Below are positions 4,184 to 49,694 of a DNA stretch of 64,000 nt, one piece after another. A program made the position numbers and the translations under genes. Location: NCBI GenBank assembly GCA_965112735.1, contig OZ218962.1:2976001-3040000 (forward strand), written 5' to 3'. The notes below the pieces were generated by a model that did no database searches, was not told where the DNA came from, and saw only the letters and a program-made list of their open reading frames with translations. The stretch's first letter is position 1. Every line of letters starts with the position of its first letter. Source of the stretch: Phaeosaccion multiseriatum (Eukaryota > Protista > Ochrophyta, other classes).

Positions 4184-7100
4184 ACAGCCACCACCCTCCC
4201 AACCACCACGCACGCCTCTGTATTCACATGCGCTGTTACATACGCCCTTACATAACCCTCACGTACCTGCAGGCGTATCTTGAACTCTTCAATCTCGAAC
4301 ACGACTTCCACTCCCTCGTGGATAAGTTTCGAGCTCATAAAGTCGAGGTCCGAGCCCTTGGCTTTCTCGAGCTCGGCCTCGATTTTCGACTTGACCGACT
4401 CGATCTTGTACACCTCCTGCAAGTAGAGGAGGTCGAATTTGGACCGTAGGAAGAAGTCGGCATTGGAACACTGGCCACAACGAAAATCGAAAAGCACGAG
4501 GTCGATGTAGAGGACATCGATATAGAGGACATCGATATAGAGGACATCGATATAGAGGACATCGATATAGAGGACATCGATTGTCGACATGGAGGTTGAC
4601 TTTGACGGACCTTGGACGCGGCGATGAGGTCATCCTTGCACGCATCCTTGTCACGCCGCCGCTTCTTTAGTAGCCTGAGGGGAGGTAGTAAGTCAATAGG
4701 GAGGCGCATGGGTGTGTGCGCGTGCGCGTGTGCTCATGTGTTTGGATTTGGATTTGGATGTGCGTGTGTGTGTGAGCTCGTGCGTGTGTATGTGTGTGTG
4801 TGTGTGTGTGAGAGAGAGAGCTGGTATGTGTGTGTACGTGTGCGCGTGCGTACACCGTGTCCCTCCCTCCCTCCGTCCGTCCCTCCCCTCCCTCCCCTCC
4901 CTCCCCTCCCTCCCCTCCCTCCCCTCCCTCCCTCCCTCCCTCCCTCCCTCTCCTCCACTTACTTCCTCATGCGCACGCACTCCACCGTGACTCTCTCCAG
5001 CGTGACCATCTTGCTCTGCTCTGCCGCCGTGTTGACGAGCCTCCCTCTGCACTCTGTGAGCAGCTTGCCGGCCTGGCTCAGCTTCTCTGCGAACTCGAAT
5101 TCGACAGATCTCGCCAATTGTGAGTAGAAGTCACGGTAGTCGTCCTGGACAGAGAGGGATGGATGGAGGGAGGGAGGGAGGGAGGGAGGGAGGGAGGGAG
5201 GGAGGGAGGGAGGGAGGGAGGGAGGGAGGGAGGGAGGGAGGGAGGGAGGGAGGGAGGGAGGGAGGGAGGGAGGGAGGGAGGGAGGGAGGGAGGGAGGGAG
5301 GGAGGGAGGGAGGGAGGGAGGGAGAGGGTTGACGTTCAAAAGCGTAGAGTCTTGTGAGGACATGATTGAAATCACTGCTGGCAGCAGATGGCAGCAGATG
5401 GCAGCAAGCCCACCTGCAGCAAATGCTCGTAGCACTGACTAAGCCGCCTGTACAGCCGTGCGTCGATGCGTCTGTCCTGCACTTTTTGGTTCACAGTGAG
5501 GGCCTTCTTTAGGTAGTCCACGGACAGCTCGAAGCGGGAGGTGTACACATAGCCCTCCGCCAGGCCTAAGGGGAGGGGGGCACCAGCGGATGACAGAAGA
5601 TAAGAAAAGATAAGAAAAGATGAGGGAAAGATAAGGAATAGATAAGGTAGGGTGAGGTAAATAAAGGCTGCTGACCTATGAGGGCTTGAAGCCTGCCCGG
5701 CAGGTGCTTTGCGTTGTCGGACAGCTCCAGGGCCCTGTCGAACGTGACCAGCCCGTAGTCAGGCTGGAAGGGTCCAGTACCGCCAAGTTAGCGGCGTATG
5801 GGATAGAGAGGTAGGGTAGAGGTGTATGGGATAGAGAGGTAGGGTAGAGGTGTATGGGACAGAGAGGTAGGGTAGAGGTGTATGGGAAAGAGAGGTAGGG
5901 TAGAGGTGTATGGGATAGAGAGGTAGGGTAGAGGTGTATGGGATAGGGAGGCAGGGTAGAGGCACATGGGATAGAGATGCAGGGTAGAGGTGTATGGGAT
6001 AGAGAGGCAGGGTAGAGGCACATGGGATAGAGAGGTAGGGTAGAGGTGTATGGGACAGAGAGGTAGGGTAGAGGTGTATGGGACAGAGAGGTAGGGTAGA
6101 GGTGTATGGGATAGAGAGTAGGGTAGAGGTGTATGGGATAGGGAGGCAGGGTAGAGGTGTATGGGACAGAGAGGCAGGGTAGAGGTGTATGGGATAGAGA
6201 GGCAGGGTAGAGGCACATGGGATAGAGAGGTAGGGTAGAGGTGTATGGGACAGAGAGGTAGGGTAGAGGTGTATGGGACAGAGAGGTAGGGTAGAGGTGT
6301 ATGGGATAGAGAGGTAGGGTAGAGGTACATGGGATAGAGAGGTAGGATAGAGGTGTATGGGACAGAGAGGTAGGGTAGAGGTGTATGGGATAGAGAGGTA
6401 GGGTAGAGGTGTATGGGATAGAGAGGTAGGGTTAAGGTGTATGGGATAGGGAGGCAGGGTAGAGGCACATGGGATAGAGAGGTAGGGTAGAGGTGTATGG
6501 GACAGAGAGGTAGGGTAGAGGCGCATGGGCGTGGAGGGGTTGAGAAGACCGTAGTCTGGCTGCTGGGTGGAAGTATTGTGCAGGCATACGGGGATAAGTG
6601 GAAGGCATACGGAGCTGAGGCCGCTGCCTGCTCGTACGTGCAGGTGGGCTGCAGCTGGGGCTGGAGCTCAAGAATTGAAGCTCAAACTGGCCCTCAAACT
6701 ATCCAATCTACGCCAGATCTCAGATTGGATTCATGACCCTGCCCTCGTCTCCCCTACCTTCCCCTGCCCTCCACCCCTCTCCAAATGTGTAGGCTCTGTC
6801 CAAACCTCCCCCCCTGCTTCTAAATCCCCTCCCCATATGCCTCTAAATCCCCTCCCCTCCCCACATGCCTCTAAATCCCCTCGCCATATGCCTCTAAATC
6901 CCCTCCCCTCCCCTCCCCATATGCCTCCAAATGCCCTCCCCTCCCCACATGCCTCCAAATAGCCTCCCCTCCCCTCTCTCCGTATGCCTCTAAATCCCCT
7001 CCCCTCCCCACATGCCTCTAAATCCCCTCCCCTCCCCATATGCCTGCAAATGCCCTCCCCCTTTCCATATGCCTCTAAATCCTCCCCTCTCCTCTCTCCA

Positions 7101-37013: not shown

Positions 37014-38875
37014 AGTCAGTGCAGAGCACCAGCGGGAGGGGGAGGGGGAGAGGCTCTGTCTGTATTCAACCCGCAGGGACCCGCAGGGACCCGCAGGGAC
37101 CCGCAGGGGGGCAAGTTGAAGGTTCGTTCTGAGCAGAGGCAACACCGCAGCACTACTACGGTCTTTCTGTGGCCTTCTTGTCATCAACAAGGCAGGCGGA
37201 GAGCGACACCTTCCTGGTAGATATCACAGACTGAGCACGAAACCATCGGATACGGCGCCCTATCTCTTTTCCTCTCTCCCTCCTTTCCTTCCTTCCTTCC
37301 TTCCTTCTTGTGTTTGGGAGGTGGAAGCCGGTGTTGATGGGGCTGCCGCCTCGGACTCTGTGCCCGGAGGTGGGGGGGGGCACACGGCACATGCACACAC
37401 GGCGCGTGATGGGGTGGCGGAGCGAAGCTCTTCTCGTTCCCCTGAGCGCTGTGGTCAATGGACGCGTGAGGGAAGTAGTAGGTCGCAGCAGTGATCTGAT
37501 GATGATGACGATGATGACTGCGGTTGTGTGTGGCCTTTGTGTCACGAAACGGCACGTGAAGGGTCGGGTCAGTCCAAGTCTTGCCGTGGGAGTGTACGTG
37601 CGCCTGGGAAAGGAGCGCCCCTCAGTAGCATACTCCCAGCACACAGGGTTTCTGTAACTGTCGGAAGCTAAAAGGGTGGGCGCGGTTGGGGCACAGAAAC
37701 AGAACACAAGCCCTCCTGCGAGGTCGTTAAAATCGCGGTTGAGTGCCCCCCTGAGGCCGATTTGAGTCAACCCTTAACGGATTTTGAAAGGGGATTATTG
37801 ACCATACTTGAACCACCTTTGAAGGCCCTTGAGCAGACTTTTGAGCGCGTGCTGTGCTGTGGGTGGTGGTGTGGCGAAGGGGGGCTGCTGTAGGCTAAGG
37901 TTGAGGGTGTATCTGTTCTGGCGGCAAAAAGGTGATCAAACTTGGGTCAGAGGGAAATGGGCGTTGTAAGCCGCCGGGGGGAGCTGCATCATCGGCCTTG
38001 AGAAATTGAGAAAATACGAAAATACATCGGTCGCCCGTATGCCTCTAATTCGTTGACTTTTGTACGAGAGAAGGAAGTGGGGATAGTGGGAGGAGGAACA
38101 GCAGCAGCGGTAGCAGCAACTTCATCAAAGTAGTTCACTCTTTCCCCTCTTTAAGCTACTTCTCTAGGGGTTTCCCTTTAGCTCCATAAGGAGAGACCCC
38201 AGACGGCATTTTCAGCAGCAGGCAGCAGCAGCAGCAGCAGCAAGGCGTGCAAAGGGCAGACGTCGCCACTGTCTACAAAGAGAGGCTTCCCGTTAGCTCA
38301 AGTCAAGAGGAGAAACGAGAGAGTGTTACCGAGCTTGACTCCCAACGGAAGTAGCAGCAGTGACAAAAGCAGTGGCAGGAGGAGCAGCAACAGCAGGGCG
38401 TTCGAGTATTTCAAAGACACCACTGGAGCCTTGGGGGGAAGCTATGCCAGGAGTGTGTAAAGTTGAGGGGTGTCAAAAGTATTCGCAGCAGGGAGGATTG
38501 TGTACGTCTCATGGAGGTGTGAGGAAGAAGTGTTCTGTCGAGGGGTGTGAAATGTATATTAGAGCTTATGGGCTCAGTATTGGAGCGCTCGAGGTAAGTT
38601 GTAACCATGTGTAAATGCGTGTATGTGTGGTATTGATGGAGCGTGATGTGGAGGGGAAGAGGATGGTAAGGGTGGTAGAGTAGAGGATAATGGGGAATGG
38701 GAAGGGAGTGAGGGGGGGAGGAGGAGATGAAGGGGTGTGGGAAGGAGTGAGGTGGTGGAGGTGATATGTGAACTATCCTACTGTGGGTGGTGCGGGTGAC
38801 AAGGCGTGACTAACTGTGGTTGCTATGCTGTGTGCTGATGGTCTCGCTGTCTGCTGGCTGGTGTACTCCTGCTCC

Positions 38876-41800
38876 TCAGGCGGCCGCTCCGTCGATGGCT
38901 CCCATGAGCCCCCAGTCGAGGGTTTCTGCTGCTTCGTGCTGCGTCATCGTGGCTCGAAGGAGGGTGCCATACCTGATCTCCCGCTGTGAGAGGGCGCGTT
39001 GAAGGGCGAGGGACAGTTGTTGGCGCAGGAGGCCCTTGATGGGGCCCGTGGCTGCCGCCGCTGCGGGGCCGAGCCCTCTTGATGCCTTGTGGATGGCCAT
39101 CGCCTCGATGAGCTCGGCCGTTTGGTGGCCCAGTCTGCCGTACGTCTCGATTGCAATGCACTTCAGGGTTGAAGTCCCGGGCAGAAAACTGCCCAGGTAG
39201 TGAATGCGCTTGCGCTCTTCGGCGGCGGCTGCTGCGTGGCCTGGCGTGGTGGAGGCCCGTCCCACGTGGGTGGGGGCGGTGGGGTTGGTGACGGTGATGT
39301 CGCAGAGGAGGTTTCTCCGCAGGGGTGCGTCCGCTCCCGGGAAGCTACCTGCGGGATAGGTCAGATCCATGCGTAGGTCTCGGCCTGCTCGGGTGCCCGT
39401 GGGGCCGTCGAAGCAGGTCTGGTCCTCTACACGTGCTCCTCCAATGCCCACGCTGTGCATCATCCTCCCGAAGGCCTTGACGAGGAGGTGGTGTGTGTGG
39501 TTGTGGAGGCCGGTGCGGGGGCAGATGGTGGCGTGGGTGGTGCTTGCCGTGCGGGCGCAGCCTGTGCCGAGGCAGGGTGGGGGCGGGTCCGCGTATGGCG
39601 TGTTGACACCGAGGTTGCGACGAAGGGCCATGGTCCATTCTGCGGGGGCCATGGTGTTGTGGCCGTGGGGGAGCGCTCCGAGGAAGGCCATGGCGCCCCT
39701 TCCTCGCTGTGAGTGGAGTCGGGCTGTTGCCATTTCCTGTGTCTCCTCTCCCCTCTGTGCCTCTGCCGGTGTGACGTCGATGGTGGCGATGCTCTGCGTC
39801 AGCTCCTCATGGCGGCGTTTGTGGATGAAGGTGGTGAGGGCCTTCTGGACGCCGTGGGTCGGTTGACGGCCTGCCTGATGGGTCCTGCGCACGTTGCGTC
39901 GCGCTGTGTCTTGGGCTTGGTGGTCAGGCGGCTCGAGTACGCGTGAGCGGGCCTCGTCGAACTGTGCCTGACCCACTGCTTGGATGAGGGGGGCCTCAGG
40001 GACCCCCTCCTCGTGCAGGAGGTTGACGCTGTCGGCGACGCTCTTGAGGGCTCCGTTGGTGAACAGCTGGTCCGGTAGGGCGCTCTCTTGGGAGCCGTCC
40101 CGGCGTGCGGTGCGGCTGAGCAGGGGGGGGAGGGTGAGCATCTTGTTGCCAAGGTATGCTGCGGGGGCGATGTCGTGGAGGCTGGTGAGGCCGAGGCCGC
40201 CGAAGCGCCGTGCCGTATGCATTTGTAGGCGCTGTGTCTCCGTCCATGGCTCCTCTTGTGCATCTGCGGCCTGCTCCAGAGGGGGGGCATCGGGGAGTCG
40301 CATGATGTGGGCCAGTGTCGCCCTGTTGGTGCGGTCTGCCCTGCTGCCGAGGGCGCGTCGGAAGATGGAGGGGTCAATGGCTCTCGCCAGGTGTGTGAGC
40401 CTGGCTGGGAGGCATTGGAGGAGGACGAGGGTGGCCGCCTGGGTGTTGTCCCACTCGCTGCAGTGTTTGGCGAGTTGGAGGTAGCCCCTGGGGTCTTCTT
40501 GGCCGAGGATGTTGCGGAGGTACTCTTCGATGTACTCCTCCGTGCCGACGGGGATGCCGGCTACCACGGTACCCTCGGTGGCAAGTGTGGCGCCCTGCCG
40601 TTGGGCGTGGTCCCTGTCAGCCTGTGTTGGCTGCTTGCCTTTGCCCATGAGGTAAACCGTTTTCCTCTCGTTGAACTCGAGGCCCAAGCCTCGGAATTGG
40701 GCTTGGAGATGGGCATGGCGTGGGGCGTAGGTCTGTAGGGGTGCGTCGGGTTCCAGCTGGTCCATGAGGTCGTCTGCGTAGGCGGAGATGGTGGGGCGGT
40801 TCGCTGCGGTGTCGGCTGTGTTCTGAACTTTCAGCACTGGGTGGATGGCGGCTGCGAACATGAGAGGCCCTTCTGGTGCTCCTTGGTTGACTCCGGAGCT
40901 CTGGTGGATGGTCTGGGTGCCGTCTGGTGTGAGGGCGTTGTGGGCGGAGGCGTGGGAGAGGCTGGCGATGGCGTAGTTGATGCCTGCTGGGTCGATGGTA
41001 GGGAGTGCGCCTGAGGCTAGGACGCCTCTGGCACGCGACACGCGGGTGTAGGCCTTGGTGATGTCATGCAGCACGACGGTTTTGCCGGCATCGTGCGCTA
41101 GCTGGGCTGCTGCGGCGTGTGTTTCCCCTCCGCCTCTGACCGCTACCGCTAGCTGTCCTGCGCTTCTGAGCTCTGGGCCCACCCTGTCCGCGATGAGCTT
41201 CATGTGACAGCTCTCCACGAGGCTGCGGTAGAGGTTGGGGGATGTCACAGGACGCGCTTTCTCGCCGAGGGCTGCGGCGCTGGTGCTGAACCACCGTTTG
41301 GCGAGCTGTGGAGGCAGTGGAGTGTCCCCCGTTCGGAGCAGCTCGTAGGTGTCAGTCAGAGCCTCCACGATTGCGTACTCCTGGGGGCTGTCCGGGGGGT
41401 ACTTGACGTGGCTCGCCCTGCGCCCGTCTGCTCCTTGGCCCTTCCAGTAGTTGACCCTCCGGTAGGTCAGCAGCATGGCTGTGCTGATCTCCTCTCTGGT
41501 GACGTCGTTGCCATTCTCGGGGTGCTCCTGCACCTGGGTTCTGGCGTACTCCCTGGCTGCTGTTGCTGCTGTGTTGATCTCTTCGAGGCTCTCGTCGACG
41601 TGCGCTTGCTGGAGGCGTCGAAAGGTCTCGTGTGTGGGAGGGAGGTGGCCGTCTCTGCTCTTTGTGCTGAGCCTCGCCGCGGCCTTGTGCAGGCCTCCGG
41701 GTTTGGTGAGCAGGTGGGCGCAGGTTTCTCTCCGTCGCTCCTCTGTCTGTGCCTGTGCTGGGGGTGGTGGGCGGCGTGCGTGTGCTGTGGCGATCGCTGC

Positions 41801-44113
41801 TTGTGCGAGTGGGGCGATGTCGAGGTCGAGGACCATCTGTATCCGCTGCTGGCGGCTGTAGGCTCCGTCTTTAGAGAAGAGCATGGCAGGGAGGAGGTGG
41901 TGGAAGACATCCCATGCCAGAAGGGTGTGGAGGGTGGCGTCGGTGGGTCCGTTCTTGTGGGCCCTCAGCGCCCTGTTCCAGTTGTTGAGCGCTCTTTGCT
42001 GTAAGCTGATAATCAAGCTTACGTGGCGGGGGTTGCACTGCGCTACTGTCTCAAACACGAGTGTTGAGAGGATGGTACCCTGCGGGTCCAGGGCCCCTAG
42101 GCGGAGGATGTTTGGGTGCTGCATGGGCCATCCTTCCTCGGGTGTATCGTCGTTGGCTGGCCCTTCTCCGTCCCCTCCGTCCCCGCCGCTACCTCCTTGG
42201 CCTCTGCTCCGTCCTCCTCCCCCTCGTCTCGCTGCTGCTGCTGTGGTTCCTTGCGTGCGTGTGCTATCTCCCCCTGCCCTTTCTCTCTGAGGTCCCCTCT
42301 CTGCTGCTGCTCCTTGTCCGTTTCCTTCCCCCCTCCCTCGTCCTCCTCTTCGTCCTTCTACTCCACTTGGCGCTGCTGCGATTGCTCCTCCTCCTCCTCC
42401 TCCTCCTCCTTCCGCGTGCCCTCGCCCTCCTCCTCTGCCCGTGGGGGTGGTGGGTTGGTACGGGTTGAGCCTGGCCGTTGCTGTCGTGTGCTGGGGCGTT
42501 GCCGTACGCGACGGGTCCTCGTTTGGGTCTGGGCCTAGATAGGCGTTCTCGAGGTCGTTGAGGGGGCCTTGGTAGGCCGATGCTGCGTTGCCTTGGGTGA
42601 GGATGGTCCTGAGGGCGGGGATGGCTCGTTGAGCTTGGTAGCCAGCCATGCAGCCTTGCGCGGGGCAGGGGAGGTTGCCTGGTGGTATGACGGGCTGCTG
42701 GTTGGCTCTCCTCAGTGTGGCTTGGTCGTTCAGGTGGTGAAGGAGGCACGCGGGGTGAACGGTGTGTTGGCAGCGTCGGGTGCGTACTGGCCACTCCGTG
42801 GTTGGTGCGATGAAAGGGGGGTCCGCGTCAGACATGCATATGCAGCATATCGGGGCTGGGGGGGCGGTAGGTTGGGGTGGGGGTGTGTGTCGGGTGGTGG
42901 GGGGTGGCTGGGACTGGCGGCGCCGTCCTTGGCTGGCCTGCGCGTGCTGCTGATGCGACTCTCTGCGCTCCCTCGCTAGGCGATCCCTTGCGCGGCCCAT
43001 AGCTCTCCCTCCTTGTGCTGTGATGGCCTGCTCGATCGTGTGCCGGTAGCAGGGGTTGCGGCAGTAGGGGCAGAGGTGGTCGTTGCGGTTGGGGTACGTG
43101 CTCATGACTCCCAATGCGCAGTGGTTGTGCACGTGATGTTCGTCTTCGTGCATGGCGACTTGTGCTTGGCCAGTGAGCGGTTCCATACACACCGGGCAGT
43201 TGGGTAGCTCCTCGTTGTTGGTGGGGTCGCCTCCTCCTTCTGCTTCGTCACCTCCTCCCTCTGCTTGCCCTTCCCCTCCTTCTGCCGCTGCTTCCCGTGC
43301 CAGTGCTGGGCGCTCTCCTCCGCCTCTGCTGTTTTCGCCCTCTCCCCCCCCTGCTACTACTCTTCCGTCGCGGTCTCCTCGTCCCCCTCCCCTGTGTCCC
43401 GCTCGCTCTCCTCTCCCTTCTCCCTCCGGGTCGTGCTCCCGTGTAGTGTCTGTCCCACCTGCTCTTGTCGGTGGGGGCATGCTGCGAGCTCGTGGTGGGA
43501 TGGTTGACGATGCCGGGAGGTGTGCTGCTTCGTATGCTCGTATGCATGTGTGGCATATGGGCTGCCGTAGGCCTGCTTGCGGGAAGCTTCTGAGGAGGGA
43601 TCTGCCGGAGTTTCTGTGGGCCAGGTTGCCGCATCCACGTATACAGTCACGTAGCTGATACGTTCTGTTCTGTAGTCCGCTCTGTGGGCCGTTGGCGCGG
43701 TACCACAGGATTGACGCGGCCTGGGGGTGGTGTTCGCGCATCCATCGTTCCCACTCTCGGCCGCGGTTGGGGTGGTGGCTCAACTGGTGCCTGTTGAGGC
43801 GGTCTCTGGACCTGCCGACCGTGACGAAGGTGTCATTGCACTGTTCGAAGTTGCAGAGGACTCCCGTGGCGATGTAGTTGTTGTCAATGTTCCTGCGGTA
43901 CGCTGTGGTGTTGTTGTGGGTGTCGTCCGTCTGTGGCGTGGTTGTGTCACTTTGGGTGGGGGTGTTGGCGGTCCTGGTGCGGTTCCCCGGGGGGCCTGCC
44001 TCGTGCGTAAGGCGAGGGCTTGCCCCGGCGCCCACCACGGTGTGGCCATGGTGTTGGCGAAGGGGGAGGTGGTGGTGTTGTTGGTGTGGTCGCGTAGGGC
44101 GTGGCCGTAGCGC
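38876..44113 (-). CDS. Retrotransposon polyprotein frame: C2H2 finger, 2 RING fingers, reverse transcriptase, CCHC knuckle, restriction-like endonuclease
   Basis: DITKAYTRVSR, SGVNQGAPEGPLMFA, SAYADD (YADD 40780-40769), RRFGGLGL, CLGTGC-x7-H-x3-C (39521-39574), RMDL..LCDITVTNP..AEERKRIHY..IAIETYGRLG; frame open from 44113. Confidence 0.93.
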   Translation of the reverse strand, partial: ALRPRPTRPHQQHHHLPLRQHHGHTVVGAGASPRLTHEAGPPGNRTRTANTPTQSDTTTPQTDDTHNNTTAYRRNIDNNYIATGVLCNFEQCNDTFVTVGRSRDRLNRHQLSHHPNRGREWERWMREHHPQAASILWYRANGPQSGLQNRTYQLRDCIRGCGNLAHRNSGRSLLRSFPQAGLRQPICHTCIRAYEAAHLPASSTIPPRARSMPPPTRAGGTDTTREHDPEGEGRGERAGHRGGGRGDRDGRVVAGGGEGENSRGGGERPALAREAAAEGGEGQAEGGGDEAEGGGDPTNNEELPNCPVCMEPLTGQAQVAMHEDEHHVHNHCALGVMSTYPNRNDHLCPYCRNPCYRHTIEQAITAQGGRAMGRARDRLARERRESHQQHAQASQGRRRQSQPPPTTRHTPPPQPTAPPAPICCICMSDADPPFIAPTTEWPVRTRRCQHTVHPACLLHHLNDQATLRRANQQPVIPPGNLPCPAQGCMAGYQAQRAIPALRTILTQGNAASAYQGPLNDLENAYLGPDPNEDPSRTATPQHTTATARLNPYQPTTPTGRGGGRGHAEGGGGGGGGAIAAAPSGVEGRRGGRGRGEGNGQGAAAERGPQRERAGGDSTRTQGTTAAAARRGGGGRSRGQGGSGGDGGDGEGPANDDTPEEGWPMQHPNILRLGALDPQGTILSTLVFETVAQCNPRHVSLIISLQQRALNNWNRALRAHKNGPTDATLHTLLAWDVFHHLLPAMLFSKDGAYSRQQRIQMVLDLDIAPLAQAAIATAHARRPPPPAQAQTEERRRETCAHLLTKPGGLHKAAARLSTKSRDGHLPPTHETFRRLQQAHVDESLEEINTAATAAREYARTQVQEHPENGNDVTREEISTAMLLTYRRVNYWKGQGADGRRASHVKYPPDSPQEYAIVEALTDTYELLRTGDTPLPPQLAKRWFSTSAAALGEKARPVTSPNLYRSLVESCHMKLIADRVGPELRSAGQLAVAVRGGGETHAAAAQLAHDAGKTVVLHDITKAYTRVSRARGVLASGALPTIDPAGINYAIASLSHASAHNALTPDGTQTIHQSSGVNQGAPEGPLMFAAAIHPVLKVQNTADTAANRPTISAYADDLMDQLEPDAPLQTYAPRHAHLQAQFRGLGLEFNERKTVYLMGKGKQPTQADRDHAQRQGATLATEGTVVAGIPVGTEEYIEEYLRNILGQEDPRGYLQLAKHCSEWDNTQAATLVLLQCLPARLTHLARAIDPSIFRRALGSRADRTNRATLAHIMRLPDAPPLEQAADAQEEPWTETQRLQMHTARRFGGLGLTSLHDIAPAAYLGNKMLTLPPLLSRTARRDGSQESALPDQLFTNGALKSVADSVNLLHEEGVPEAPLIQAVGQAQFDEARSRVLEPPDHQAQDTARRNVRRTHQAGRQPTHGVQKALTTFIHKRRHEELTQSIATIDVTPAEAQRGEETQEMATARLHSQRGRGAMAFLGALPHGHNTMAPAEWTMALRRNLGVNTPYADPPPPCLGTGCARTASTTHATICPRTGLHNHTHHLLVKAFGRMMHSVGIGGARVEDQTCFDGPTGTRAGRDLRMDLTYPAGSFPGADAPLRRNLLCDITVTNPTAPTHVGRASTTPGHAAAAAEERKRIHYLGSFLPGTSTLKCIAIETYGRLGHQTAELIEAMAIHKASRGLGPAAAAATGPIKGLLRQQLSLALQRALSQREIRYGTLLRATMTQHEAAETLDWGLMGAIDGAAA

Positions 44114-45252
44114 TCAACGATGGCTTGGACGTCGGGTAATACCGCGATGAGTTCCTCCTGTCGTGAGGCGGTGATGTAGTCGTTGACCAACTCGTTGGAG
44201 GTGATCTCTTGGCCTGCGAGCGTGTGGGCATAGGCCTCCACGATCTGTTGCCATCCAAGGGGGTAATCTCCTCCCCCATGTGGTCTTCCGGGGGTGGTGG
44301 GGGGGCCTCCGCTCCTTAGAGCTTGTCTGAGGAGGGGCATATAGAAGTGCGAGTTGGTAGGCGGGAGCGCCGCGTCGCGCTGGTGGCGTATGGTGTTGCT
44401 CCATGTCGTTGGTGCGTGTCCATGCGTGTCTGTTTCGAGTGATGCTGTCTCTTCCTCGTGCGTCGTGGGGGGTGGTCGTACGAGGTCGGCGATGGCCTCG
44501 GCCGTGTTGTGGTGGGTCAGTTCCGTCGCGGTGAGGTTTAGGCTTGCGAACTCAGCGCTGATGCGTCGGCTGGCGGATGCTGGCGCTTGTTCGTTGAAGA
44601 AGAGGTTCGGGTGTTGCCGTATGGGGGTCGTGGCTGTGAGGTGGGTGTCTTCGTATTCGTCTTGGAGGATGGAGACGATTTGCTCTGTGATCCCGTGTGC
44701 GTTTCTGTGAGTTGACGCGTTGGTGGTTTGGGCTGGATCTGAGGCTCGGAAAGTGGCGGTTGGCCTTTCCGGGCTGCGTGCTCGGGGGGTCCTGCTTCGT
44801 CCCCTTGGCCTCGTGGTTGGCTGCATGGGTGCTGGGCTGGTCGCTGTGGGGGGTGGTGCTGTTGTAGGGCCTGTTGTCTCGCTGGCGGGCGTGGTAGATC
44901 TCCTGGCGGCTGGTGCTGTTTGTTGCCGTGTCGTTGAGATCGGTTGTGGTTGCTGCTGCTGGGGGTGGGCTTCCGCTGCTGTTGCTGTGGGTTCCGTGAG
45001 TGCTGGTGGGAGCTGTGGGTCCTGCGGGAGGGTGTTGCGGGGTGCTGCGGCCGCTGGTGGAGCCGTGATGGGGGTGGGCACGCCTTCCCGTGCTGGTGTT
45101 TGGCGAATTGCTGCTGCCGCTGCCCGTCTCTCCCTTCTTTCGAGCCGCTGCTGATCGCGGCTCATAGGTGGCTCCTGCTGGGTTGCTGTGAGGTTTGCTG
45201 GTGTCTCCTGGGCTCCGGGGGGCCGCGTGGCCCCCCTGTCGTCCCCTTCCAT
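43780..45252 (-). CDS. Retrotransposon upstream ORF (ORF1, or the frameshifted N-terminus of the polyprotein)
   Basis: 490-aa Pro/Thr-rich ORF starting GCCACCATGG; overlaps the RT frame, which is in the -1 frame. Confidence 0.7.
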   Translation of the reverse strand: MEGDDRGATRPPGAQETPANLTATQQEPPMSRDQQRLERRERRAAAAAIRQTPAREGVPTPITAPPAAAAPRNTLPQDPQLPPALTEPTATAAEAHPQQQQPQPISTTRQQTAPAARRSTTPASETTGPTTAPPPTATSPAPMQPTTRPRGRSRTPRARSPERPTATFRASDPAQTTNASTHRNAHGITEQIVSILQDEYEDTHLTATTPIRQHPNLFFNEQAPASASRRISAEFASLNLTATELTHHNTAEAIADLVRPPPTTHEEETASLETDTHGHAPTTWSNTIRHQRDAALPPTNSHFYMPLLRQALRSGGPPTTPGRPHGGGDYPLGWQQIVEAYAHTLAGQEITSNELVNDYITASRQEELIAVLPDVQAIVERYGHALRDHTNNTTTSPFANTMATPWWAPGQALALRTRQAPRGTAPGPPTPPPKVTQPRHRRTTPTTTPQRTAGTLTTTTSPRESSATSNSAMTPSSRSAGPETASTGTS

Positions 45253-46751
45253 GGTGGCCCTGTCTTAAGCAGAAAAAAAGAGTGGGTGTGACAAGCAGTC
45301 GAAGCAGGGAGGATTGTGTGCGTCTCATGGAGCTGTGAGGAAGAGGTGCTCTGTCGAAGGGTGTGAAAAGCGGTCGAGGCAGGGAGGATTATTTATTTCG
45401 CATGGAGCTGTGAGGAAGAGGTGTAGTGAAGGGGGCTGCAACAAGTACCCTCAGCGTGGTTTAGGTGGGATGTGCATCAGACACGCTCGAATGAAACGAG
45501 AGAGAGGAGAGCAGCAGGAGGGGGGGCTTCAGTGTGCGCCTGGATCTAAGCGACGAGCTGCAACCGACATCCGTGGGAGAGAAGGGAAGAGGGCAAGACT
45601 TCCAACCAAGGAAGAAGACAATGAAGAGAACGACAGGAAGGAGGAGAGTGGGGAAGGATTGATTGCGAGGCTGGGGCTCCATGTCGGGGACGAGGTTCAG
45701 CTGCCCGCTGGTCTGTGGAGGGAGCTGGAGGGTGGTGGGGCTGAGGCTGCCGCGGTGTGCTTGGGCCATCGAGACACAGAGCTGTCGAATGGCGTGGTGG
45801 TGACTGTGGGCCGGAGGAGGGTGAGGCTACTGCCCTACTGTGCGGTCCGCACCAAGAGGAAGGGGGCCAGCGTGGAGAGCATTGTTGGAGGCTTTGTGTC
45901 TGCCTACCACCGCTATCGCTCAGGTGGAGGGGGTGATGATGCTGATGACGAGAAGCGAGAGGAGGAGTGGGCGGTGCTGGAGGAGAGCATGGTGACGGCG
46001 AGTGAGAGAAAGAAGCGCGGGCGGAAGGCGCTGCGAGCGTGCGTGCGTGTGGAGGGCCCAAGGTCGGGTCTTGAGCTGTGAAGACCCGATGACGAGAAGT
46101 GGTGCTCTGTCATTCAGTATCTAATAGATTGTCTGCTGGAAGCAGATGCACTGATGCAGTGTATGGAGAGTGGACAGGGGGTGGGAAGGGACAGAGGGGG
46201 GTAACATGGAGGAGGGGCTGGCTTGGGCGAATGAGCACTCGGCAACCATCAAGGCACGGAGGTGGCCAAAGCCTGCGCTCCGACGATTGATCGAAGTATA
46301 CGTCAAAGAAGGAAGGCAGGTCTAGACTGACACTTCAGAAGGAGTTTGACACCTCAAGATTGATCGAAGTATACGTCAAAGAAGGAAGGCAGGTCTAGTG
46401 TGAGTCCCTCATCATGAGGTTAGAAAGCACACAGAGCCTCCTCCCATGTCTGTGGAACCGGTCCTGGAACCTGCTCCTTCCTTACCACCGTAGAGGCAAC
46501 AGCGGGGATGAAGGCCAACAGGGTGGTTACGCCTCAAGGTAGGCAGCAGCAGCCATTGAGGCTCGACCAAGGCCTTTAGCCTGGATGTGTTCCCCTGTGA
46601 CTGAGAGGAGCCTGACTCCTAACTCAAGATCTTATCTCTGGCCGGCGGGAGCGAGATTGAGAGAGTATAAAATCGAAGAGAATGGTCGCCCGTATGCCTC
46701 TAATTCATTGACTTTCTGTACGGAGAGGGGGACCTCGGACCTCCGCCCCCT

Positions 46752-47181
46752 GCAAGGAAAAGAGTAGAACAGATCGACCCATCGGCAGTAGCAGCAGCAG
46801 TACCATCAGCAGCGGGAGCAGCAACTTCACCCCGCCCCCCGAAGCAAGGAGTAGAACACATCCACCCATCGGGGCGCCATCAGCAGCGGCAGCAGCAACT
46901 TCACCCCCCCCCCCCCCCCTGCAAGGAAAAGAGTAGAACACATCGACCCATCGGAAGTAGCAGCAGCGGTACCATCAGCAGCGGGAACAGCAACTCCCCC
47001 CCCCCCCCCCCCGAAGCAAGGAGTAGAACACATCGACCCATCGGCAGTAGCAGCAGCGGTACCATCAGCAGCGGGAGCAGCAACTTCACCCCCCCTTCCC
47101 CCCACCCCCCGAAGCAAGGAGTAGAACACATCGACCCATCGGCAGCAGCAGCAGCGGCACCATCAGCAGCGGCAGCAGCAA
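46752..47181. repeat. ~90-bp imperfect tandem repeat (x5) ending in poly-C
   Basis: GCAAGGA..GTAGAACACATCGACCCATCGGCAGTAGCAGCAGC..CAACTTCACCCC units. Confidence 0.8.
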
Positions 47182-47517
47182 CGTCATCAACGTAGTTATA
47201 ATTCACTCTTTTCCCCTCTTTAAGCCACTTCTCTAGGGGCTTCCCTTTAGCCCAATAAGGAGAGACAGCCGACGGCATTTTCAGCAGCAGGCAGCAGCAG
47301 CAGCAGCAGCAAGGCGTGCAAAGGGCAGACGTCGCCACTGTCTACAAAGAGAGGCTTCCCGTTAACTCAAGTCAAGAGGAGAAACGAGAGAGTGTTACCT
47401 TACCGAGCTTGACTCCCAACGGAAGTAGCAGCAGTGACAAAAGCAGTGGCAGGAGGAGCAGCAACAGCAAGGCGTTCGAGTATTTCAAAGACACCACTGG
47501 AGCCTTGGAGGGAAGCT

Positions 47518-49694
47518 ATGCCAAGAGTGTGTAAAGTTGAGGGGTGTCAAAAGCAGTCGGTTCAGGGAGGGTTGTGTGTGTCCCATGGAGCTCAAGTGAA
47601 GAGGTGCTCTGTCGAGGGGTGTCAAAAGTATTCGAAGCAGGGAGGATTGTGTACGTCTCATGGAGCCGTGACCAAGAGGTGCTCTGTCGAGGGGTGTCAA
47701 ACGCAGTCGAAGCAGGGAGGATTGTGTGTGTCCCATGGAGCTGTGACCAAGAGGTGTTCTATCGAGGGGTGTGACATGTATATTAGAGCTTATGGGCTCA
47801 GTATTGGAGCGCTCGAGGTAAGTTGTAACCATGTGTAGATGCGTGTATGTGTGGTATTGATGGAGCGTGATGTGGAGGGGAAGAGGATGGTAAGGGTGGT
47901 AGAGTAGAGGATAATGGGGAATGGGAAGGGAGTGAGGGGGGGAGGAGGGGATGAAGGGGTGTGGGAAGGAGTGAGGTGGTGGAGGTGATATGTGAACTAT
48001 CCTACTGTGGGTGGTGCGGGTGACAAGGCGTGACTAACTGTGGTTGCTATGCTGTGTGCTGATGGTCTCGCTGTCTGCTGGCTGGTGTACTCCTGCTCCT
48101 CAGGCGGCCGCTCCGTCGATGGCTCCCATGAGCCCCCAGTCGAGGGTTTCTGCTGCTTCGTGCTGCGTCATCGTGGCTCGAAGGAGGGTGCCATACCTGA
48201 TCTCCCGCTGTGAGAGGGCGCGTTGAAGGGCGAGGGACAGTTGTTGGCGCAGGAGGCCCTTGATGGGGCCCGTGGCTGCCGCCGCTGCGGGGCCGAGCCC
48301 TGTGACAAGCAGTCTAGGCAGGGAGGATTGTGTGCGTCTCATGGAGCCGTGACCAAGAGGTGTTCTGTCGAGGGGTGTCAAAAGAGGCGTGTCCAGGGAG
48401 GATTGTGTACGTCTCATGGAGCCGTAGTCAAGAGGTGTTCTGTCGAGGGGTGTCAAAAGAGGCGTGTCCAGGGAGGATTATGTACGTCTCATGGAGCTGT
48501 GAGGAAGAGGTGTTCTGTCGAGGGGTGTCAAAAGCACTCGGTTCAGGGAGGGTTGTGTGTGTCCCATGGAGCTCAAGTGAAGAGGTGTTCTGTCGAGGGG
48601 TGTCAAAAGCAGTCGAAGCAGGGAGGATTATGTGCGTCTCATGGAGCTGTGACCATGAGGTGTTCTGTCGAGGGGTGTCAAAAGCAGTCGAGGCGGGAGG
48701 ATTGTGTGCGTCTCATGGAGCTGTGACCAAGAAGTGTTCTGTCGAGGGGTGTCAAAAGCAGTCGCAGCAGGGAGGATTGTGTGCGTCTCATGGAGCTGTG
48801 ACCAAGAGGTGCTCTGTCGAGGGGTGTCAAAAGCAGTCGAAGCAGGGAGGATTGTGTGCGTCTCATGGGGCTCAACTCAAGAGGTGTTCTGTCGAGGGGT
48901 GTCAAAAGCAGTCGAGGCAGGGAGGATTGTGTGCGTCTCATGGGGCTCAACTCAAGAGGTGTTCTGTCGAGGGGTGTCAAAAGCAGTCGAGGCAGGGAGG
49001 ATTATGCACAGCCCATGGAGCTGTGAGGAAGAGGTGTAGCGAAGGGGGCTGCAACAAACACCCTCAGCATGGCTTAGGTGGGATGTGCATCAGACATGCA
49101 CGAATGAAACGAGAGAGAGCAGAGCAGCAGGAGGGGGGGCTTCAGTGTGCGCCTGGATCTAAGCGACGAGCTGCAACCGACATCCGTGGGAGAGAAGGGA
49201 AGAGGGCAAGACTTCCAACCAAGGAAGAAGACAACGAAGAGAACGACAGGGAGGAGGACAGTGGGGAAGGATTGATTGCGAGGCTGGGGCTCCATGTCGG
49301 GGACGAGGTTCAGCTGCCCGCTGGTCTGTGGCGGGAGCTGGAGGGTGGTGGGGCTGAGGCTGCCGCGGTGTGCTTGGGCCATCGAGACACAGAGCTGTCG
49401 AATGGCGTGGTGGTGACTGTGGGCCGGAGGAGGGTGAGGCTACTTCCCTACTGTGCGGTTCGCACCAAGAGGAAGGGGGCCAGCGTGGAGAGCATTGTTG
49501 GAGACTTTGTGTCCGCCTACCACCGGTACCGCTCAGGTGGAGGGGGTGATGATGCTGACGATGAGCAGCAGGAGGAGGAGTGGGCGGTGCTGGAGGAGAG
49601 CATGGTGACGGCGAGTGAGAGAAAGAAGCGCGGGCGGAAGGCGCTGCGAGCGTGCGTACGTGTGGAGGGCCCAAGCTCGGGGCTTGAGCTGTAG
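47518..49694 (+). pseudogene. WRKY19-like zinc-finger repeat gene B, 14 units of 75 bp; interrupted in unit 4 and frameshifted in unit 9
   Basis: Units at 47530, 47605, 47680, 47755, 48361, 48436, 48511, 48586, 48661 (1-nt deletion ~48694), 48735, 48810, 48885, 48960, 49035; same C-terminal domain as gene A. Confidence 0.88.
47777..48300 (-). mobile_element. 5'-truncated copy (524 bp) of the same retrotransposon
   Basis: Matches 38553-39076 with 2 differences seen; TSD TGTGACA (47770-47776, 48301-48307); 1-nt microhomology at the truncation. Confidence 0.93.

Follow-up and report, generated by a model that had tools for sequence, protein, structure and literature searches.

How two copies of one retrotransposon came to occupy the identical base of a protein-coding repeat in two separate genes is the question raised by a 64,000-nucleotide (nt) stretch of the Phaeosaccion multiseriatum genome (assembly GCA_965112735.1, contig OZ218962.1, positions 2,976,001 to 3,040,000, forward strand). 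This whole stretch is referred to here as the window, and positions are those of the window unless a contig is named. Two paralogous genes, A and B, lie on its plus strand and are built of 75-bp repeat units that match the zinc-finger family Zf_WRKY19 (Pfam PF24906; E = 3.9e-35). Each gene is interrupted by an element inserted antisense to it (Table 1), copy 1 in the second unit of gene A and copy 2 in the fourth unit of gene B, and a re-reading of the coordinates and anatomy agreed with this arrangement as described in a first-pass annotation. The element is a retrotransposon without long terminal repeats (a non-LTR retrotransposon) and belongs to the restriction-like-endonuclease group. It is very probable, in our view, that the multicopy zinc-finger repeat is the target of this element and that the insertions arose independently, by target priming and with site specificity.

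Table 1. Positions of host gene parts, element copies and element features in the window, and of older-subfamily copies on other contigs
Feature	Position	Strand	Remarks
Host gene A, 5' part	38444..38552	+	Start codon, unit 1, and unit 2 as far as the insertion point; letters read directly
Target copy in gene A, GAGGGGTGTGAAA	38540-38552	+	Last host letters before copy 1
Retrotransposon copy 1, full-length	38553..45283	-	6731 bp; begins (plus strand) TGTATATTAGAG...
3' untranslated region (UTR)	38553..38875	-	C-rich; fold z -1.6
Equivalent antisense intron of copy 1	38594..38879	+	286 nt, GT..AG; predicted from the copy 2 joint
Open reading frame 2 (ORF2) frame	38876..44038	-	1720 codons open; N-terminal fingers, reverse transcriptase, endonuclease
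CCHC and PD-(D/E)XK restriction-like endonuclease	39197..39574	-	ORF2 residues about 1489-1614
Reverse transcriptase core	40646..41161	-	ORF2 residues 960-1131; Pfam RVT_1
ORF1	43783..45252	-	490 amino acids, no Pfam match; overlaps the ORF2 frame, which is the -1 frame
Host gene A, 3' part	45284..46081	+	Opens with GGGTGTGACA, a possible second target copy
Host gene B, 5' part	47518..47776	+	Units 1-3 (TGT-CAA type), and unit 4 (TGT-GAC) as far as the insertion point
Retrotransposon copy 2, 5'-truncated	47777..48301	-	525 bp, element positions 6214-6738
Antisense intron of copy 2	47818..48103	+	Joint observed in run X5
Host gene B, 3' part	48302..49694	+	Continues the reading frame of the 5' part when the insertion and one target copy are left out
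Older-subfamily copies	C1:452689, C1:453643, C3:1463404, C5:102362, C13:1603541, C13:1605469, C8:1525260

The two copies differ from each other at only 2 of 525 nt (99.6% identity), whereas the genes that carry them show 30 mismatches and 6 gaps over 467 nt upstream of the insertions and 49 differences over 810 nt downstream, being 90.6 to 93.8% identical overall. The copies are thus younger than the duplication of the host gene, as had been proposed, and the contrary case, in which one insertion was duplicated together with its host and the element copies are as diverged as the genes, was not what was found. The first-pass annotation had also assigned the copies target site duplications (TSDs) of differing length. 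For copy 2, host sequence (GAGGGGTGTGACA) stops at 47776, directly before the element, and GTGACA is present on both sides (47771-47776 and 48302-48307), giving a TSD of 6 bp. Copy 1, the 3' end of which reads ...CTCTAATATACA, is followed at its other end by GGGTGTGACA (45284-45293) and then AGCAG, where gene A resumes. The resulting 10-bp TSD is ambiguous, and the true one may be shorter, because full-length copies inserted in TGC-type targets also have GGGTGTG at their 5' end, and this sequence thus possibly belongs to the element itself; with GGGTGTG (45284-45290) assigned to its 5' end, copy 1 measures 6738 bp.

The site was examined across the 67-Mb genome by locating copies through an exact match to the 25-nt 3' end of the element, with the reversed sequence as a control. 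The 3' end gave 116 genome matches vs 0 for the control, and the 3' UTR (38553-38875) used as a genome query gave 45 scored matches with 97 to 100% identity. Two pattern searches listed 104 junctions with 16-nt flanks, in which core sequences were counted by hand, and a non-redundant subset of 61 junctions had 45-nt flanks. It was found that the 10-nt core GG(G/C/T)TG(T/C)GA-N-A precedes 79 of the 104 listed junctions, where chance would predict about 0.002, and that a further 12 retain at least (T/C)GA-N-A, bringing the total to 91. All 61 of the non-redundant junctions have A at position -1, and 60 have G at position -4 and likewise 60 at position -6; about three quarters of these junctions have a zinc-finger unit (TACTGT-GAG) upstream. 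Nearly all copies occupy this one site, which can be written GAG-GGG-TG(T/C)-GA(N)-A, encodes Glu-Gly-Cys-Asp/Glu, and lies within the coding repeat (75 or 81 bp) of a large family of tandemly arranged zinc-finger genes of the Zf_WRKY19 type. Within the arrays a single position of the unit is used, and the element is always antisense to the gene. GAG is the commonest target codon genome-wide, with GAC, GAA and GAT also hit, and the two insertions of the window represent only GAA and GAC. The TGC or TGT state and the N base at the junction match the local gene subfamily; as these vary with the subfamily, and as 247 empty GGGGTGYGANAAGCA sites are present in the genome, the flank at the junction belongs to the host rather than to the element. 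The proposal made from the two window copies, that a coding zinc-finger repeat serves as the target, therefore extends to the family as a whole, and the core at 91 of the 104 listed junctions is at odds with the possibility that most copies lie in unrelated sequence.

Junctions with an imperfect core fell into two groups. The first comprises insertions that adjoin the target remnant of an earlier element, in tandem or nested arrays, and the second comprises off-target DNA with a core, namely GCGAGA on contig C11, CGACA on C12, CTGTGAAA on C8 and a (GT)n tract on C13. Copies in DNA other than zinc-finger sequence are located at C13:1085877, C11:1216994, C12:3051606, C8:2661265, C7:3858550 and C7:3894178; most of them keep a short core (GTGA, GCGAGA, CGACA or CTGTGAAA), and both C7 copies are without one.

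The element also discriminates between units of the same repeat. Both units hit in the window read TGT-GA(C/A) and most unhit units read TGT-CAA, a difference remarked on in the first-pass annotation that holds on contig C13, the genes of which mostly read TGT-CAA: CAA units there are hit in 0 of 39 cases vs 4 of 13 for non-CAA units (hypergeometric p = 0.003 if the four hits were random). Among the 104 listed junctions, none follows TG(T/C)-CA-N-A, despite 60 empty GGGGTGYCANAAGCA sites genome-wide. On C1, 21 of 56 GAG units are occupied vs 7 of 52 GAC units, both figures being inflated by duplicates. The first base of the codon after Cys thus matters, units with GAG, GAC, GAA or GAT being hit and units with CAA spared. 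A looser form of targeting was also considered, in which a regional or chromatin preference for the arrays is combined with a short, degenerate nick motif, similar to the "relative site specificity" of ingi/L1Tc. Such a preference would account for the strong clustering of copies in arrays on C1 (0.09-0.78 Mb) and C8 (1.43-1.74 and 2.17-2.66 Mb), as well as for the imperfect core at about a quarter of the junctions. However, only one position of the unit is used, CAA units of the same genes are spared, and the core recurs outside the arrays, leaving this explanation very unlikely.

A shared site could instead have been inherited, had one or a few insertions been multiplied inside the tandem zinc-finger arrays through segmental duplication, unequal crossing-over or gene conversion. 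Such processes have left traces. Over C1:680000-694000 (L045-L047, L029 and L030), a truncated pair (element nt 5790 and 3752) occurs four times at a spacing of about 4.1 kb, and left flanks have been swapped between copies (GAGA vs GACA), a pattern indicative of segmental duplication together with unequal recombination inside the arrays. As a general explanation, however, spread from one or a few insertions is scarcely credible. At least 32 distinct points of 5' truncation, spanning 53 bp to 6.4 kb, are represented among the copies for which both ends were read; a dozen full-length copies have differing 5' junctions, and copies spanning 53 bp to 6.74 kb share a common 3' base. Target duplications measure 0 to 15 bp, most being 5 to 12 bp, and the copies are distributed over 11 contigs, some in non-finger DNA that has only the core. 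The number of truncation points, the variable duplications and the contrast between element and host identity in the window therefore argue for independent, target-primed insertions, in agreement with what had been claimed for the window pair. A diverged subfamily, 80 to 91% identical in the 3' region, is inserted at the same site, and thus the specificity is no recent accident. An older subfamily, with a 3' end that begins TTTATATT and a 3' UTR that is 80 to 84% identical, was found mostly at the same target core (Table 1).

Several observations weigh against the reading of independent insertion at a defined site. Some copies are segmental duplicates (for example those of C1:680-694 kb), so that copy counts exceed event counts. 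In several element copies the two target copies mismatch at the N position; as one insertion shows both states in tandem duplicates, these mismatches are read as the outcome of later unequal recombination, which is not proven. The host repeat is itself conserved at positions -20 to -11, and conservation of these positions at junctions does not delimit the length of the recognition site. The joint expected of an empty site in gene B (47776 to 48302) was found in none of four public runs, which consisted of contigs only and were hence uninformative. Both reading frames are open from end to end in just 1 of the 13 full-length copies examined. The frame-breaking differences among these copies are mostly single bases in homopolymer runs, which are frequently miscalled in long-read assemblies, and may therefore be assembly errors. 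Finally, the reverse transcriptase match to RVT_1, at 29.6 bits, is exactly at the curated Pfam cut-off.

Assignment of the element to the restriction-like-endonuclease group follows from its reverse transcriptase and C-terminal CCHC and PD-(D/E)XK regions, together with the lack of an apurinic/apyrimidinic (AP)-type endonuclease, terminal repeats and poly(A). The element has neither long terminal repeats nor terminal inverted repeats, and copy 1 has no internal direct or inverted repeats besides the host repeat units. No Pfam match to an AP-type endonuclease (Exo_endo_phos) was obtained with ORF1 or ORF2, even at E values up to 5, and Pfam profile searches of the element ORFs detected no Myb, RNase H or protease (Ulp1) domain. 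A sequence search of the PDB gave a marginal match to the R2 reverse transcriptase (E = 0.17), the alignment of which includes the ADD motif. C-terminal to the reverse transcriptase is a CCHC motif followed by H, E, D, D-x-T and K. In an alignment with 24 homologues, C110, H123, C127, H137, E159, D179, D201 and Y235 are invariant, and the K is nearly so. The last 341 residues of ORF2 gave a structure model with a predicted local distance difference test (pLDDT) score of 88.9. When this model was used in a fold search, PDB ranks 1 to 7 were all R2 proteins (probability 0.96-1.00; E = 7.5e-4 to 2.5e-2), followed with much weaker scores by Prp8 and PD-(D/E)XK nucleases.

The N terminus of ORF2 contains one C2H2-like finger and two RING-like fingers. 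The RING-like Cys/His clusters are located ahead of the reverse transcriptase at 42650-43855 (ORF2 residues about 280-440), and zf-RING_2 scored 20.5 bits there vs a cut-off of 27.3. The ORF1 and ORF2 frames meet at a run of five or six C residues near 43962 (about 43958-43964; element nt about 1329). A five-C run with two overlapping frames was present in 4 of the 13 full-length copies, including copy 1 of the window, and a six-C run with one continuous frame at that point in the other 9. The sense-strand fold of the 3' UTR was not significantly stable (z -1.6). An exhaustive HMMER search with ORF2 returned 886 distant homologues with coverage of the reverse transcriptase and C terminus. None of the 886 is a named relative, the nearest being unnamed metagenomic proteins with at most 33% identity. 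A word-indexed protein search gave 2 matches, and an Atlas search yielded nothing beyond generic reverse transcriptase clusters. No zinc-finger repeat was found after the ORF of the distant relatives P0003, P0004 and P0007, each of which is present as a single copy, so that the element ends are not definable.

At the fixed 3' junction, the antisense strand of the element is continuous with the coding strand of the host. The probable sequence of events is that the element protein recognizes the site and introduces a nick into the coding strand behind GA-N-A, and that the freed 3'-OH then primes reverse transcription from the last bases of the RNA (...AUAUACA), without poly(A). Cutting of the other strand at a variable distance, 0 to 15 bp upstream, would then yield the variable target duplications. 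A coding-strand nick after GACA had been put forward in the first-pass annotation. The site and the strand agree with the fixed junction, the codon is mainly GAG, and the exact base is uncertain: the nick can be placed to within one base only, because the final A is present even at several non-target junctions and so is possibly contributed by the element. For an element inserting in this way, the multicopy coding repeat is probably the counterpart of what ribosomal DNA (rDNA) is for R2, offering renewable targets of which individual losses would be bearable to the host.

The 5' ends of full-length copies carry a sequence that resembles the target. GGGTGTG, as in TGT-type targets, was observed at these ends even where the copy is inserted in a TGC-type target (45284-45290; C1 L033, L036 and L049), and is followed by a short variable stretch (AGAGT, AAGAA, AGATG and others) and a run of 7 to 8 A residues. 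Its occurrence in TGC-type targets indicates that target-like sequence travels with the RNA, and it probably stems from a master copy whose transcription began within the target remnant lying upstream of it. Annealing of the cDNA for second-strand synthesis may be aided by this carried sequence; a 5'-carried sequence with such a role has been described for some R2 elements. Taken further, base pairing could be the main source of site precision, with an endonuclease of weak specificity: the flank of a read-through RNA (UCUCACACCCC) would anneal to the nicked target end, and 5' CACACCC would anneal for the second strand. Target sequence follows every copy, so that a read-through RNA would carry it, and both the TGT-type GGGTGTG on copies in TGC-type targets and the occasional difference at N between the left and right target copies are compatible with such pairing. 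However, the N base and the TGC or TGT state beside the 3' junction match the local host and are not copied from a master RNA, the GA-N-A core persists at off-target sites, and no read-through RNA was observed. Precision that comes mainly from base pairing is thus unlikely, and base pairing can coexist with recognition by the protein rather than replace it.

Compared with known elements, the machinery is ordinary and the kind of target unusual. Clear structural matches to the element model were obtained with R2 proteins alone, which also ranked best, and the two systems share the order of reverse transcriptase, linker, CCHC and restriction-like endonuclease, a precise 3' junction without poly(A), variable 5' truncation, a multicopy target and an N-terminal zinc finger. 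Unlike R2, which targets 28S rDNA, the present element targets a coding repeat, has two RING-like fingers and no detected Myb domain, and has an ORF1 that forms its own frame or is joined to ORF2, and the sequence match between the two is very weak. Elements of the CRE clade (CRE1/2, SLACS and CZAR; MoTeR, Cnl1 and FoTeR) likewise encode a restriction-like endonuclease, carry C2H2 fingers at the N terminus and are strictly specific for a short sequence present in many copies. The endonuclease pattern given for CRE/SLACS is C-X1-3-C-X7-8-H-X3-4-C-X9-10-RHD/N...E...R/KPD-X12-14-D/E (PMC12857005), and the element has the same motif order (CCHC, H, E, D, D/E) with most spacings fitting; it differs in having C-X4-C, THH, RMD and 21 residues before the last acidic residue. 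Agreement with the CRE/SLACS pattern is partial, and the label "CRE-like" given in the first-pass annotation is provisional. The targets differ as well, those of the CRE clade being spliced-leader (SL) RNA genes or telomere repeats. Utopia and NeSL elements, which target U2 small nuclear RNA (snRNA) or SL1 and of which Utopia was found in oomycete stramenopiles, share with the present element a restriction-like endonuclease, a stramenopile host, the use of one position of a small multicopy gene, and tandem or nested arrays (PMC4640811). In the element studied here, by contrast, the flanks are zinc-finger coding units and not an RNA gene, and neither RNase H nor Ulp1 was detected.

The closest parallel in terms of target is provided by the ingi/RIME elements, which are members of the AP-endonuclease group. 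These non-LTR elements have a hot spot at one coding position of the trypanosome RHS multigene family, a large protein-coding family in which their insertion has turned many members into pseudogenes (PMC7563717, citing Bringaud et al. 2002). They differ from the present element in that their site specificity is relative, with many copies elsewhere, and in that RHS offers a single site per gene instead of an intragenic tandem repeat. Targets listed for restriction-like-endonuclease elements comprise rRNA, spliced-leader, tRNA and snRNA genes, transposons, microsatellites and telomeres (PMC4640811), to which a 2026 review added no coding target (PMC13580325). A full-text literature search, the scope of which did not extend to the large survey of Fell et al. 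(2025), turned up no report of a coding repeat as the target of a restriction-like-endonuclease element. The view that this kind of target had not been described before therefore stands for restriction-like-endonuclease elements in the literature searched, but does not stand for coding multigene families at large, for which ingi/RIME in RHS is a precedent (PMC7563717).

The region was also present in public sequencing runs. Runs X1 and X3 resemble noisy genomic long reads, and X5 derives from another sample of the same organism. From its profile we infer that X5 is RNA (its automatic label is "DNA?"): depth is zero over the intergenic interval 46476-46743, and a joint between 47817 and 48104, at a depth of 3609 vs 3.7 in the interior, removes 286 nt from copy 2. 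On the plus strand the borders of this intron read GAG/GTAAGT...CTCCTCAG/G, and the genome assembly contains no match to the joined form. The intron strand is antisense to the element and sense to the host gene. All of the 3' UTR but the final 41 nt falls within the intron, the acceptor of which overlaps the complement of the stop codon of ORF2. The donor GTGAGT, the TGACTAAC box and the acceptor CACAG are retained in the diverged subfamily (80 to 84% identical) despite several interior indels. Splicing does not rescue the host gene, because the spliced host frame reaches a stop about 40 codons on. Antisense splicing of the whole element, from a donor 41 nt inside the 3' end to an acceptor (...CTTAAGCAG) near the 5' end, was considered and rejected: the frame of copy 1 is not restored with 7 A residues, and an X5 contig passes unspliced through that acceptor to 45279.

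A running conflict between host and element, with effects on both, could tie the spared codon to the antisense intron. Under this proposal, the gene subfamily on C13 would have escaped by a change from GA-N to CAA in the codon behind the invariant Cys, which would abolish the nick site yet preserve the finger, and, as the host always transcribes the element backwards, the element would retain a true spliceosomal intron that removes the complement of the 3' UTR from host read-through RNA and thereby shields the 3' UTR from double-stranded RNA formation and silencing. The 3' UTR is presumably bound by the reverse transcriptase. Escape and shielding together make a doubtful proposition at present.

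Overall, this is a young retrotransposon family, with dozens of separate insertions observed at one base. A dedicated coding target extends the idea of a safe harbour in multicopy sequence to a coding minisatellite. With a single codon base after Cys (G or C) as the switch between hit and unhit units, both target recognition and host escape become directly testable. The N-terminal module, with its C2H2 finger, two RING-like fingers and no Myb domain, would represent a new solution to DNA recognition, and restriction-like-endonuclease enzymes of this class are now under development for gene insertion. Many members of the zinc-finger gene family are disrupted, and the element should accordingly drive turnover of that family.

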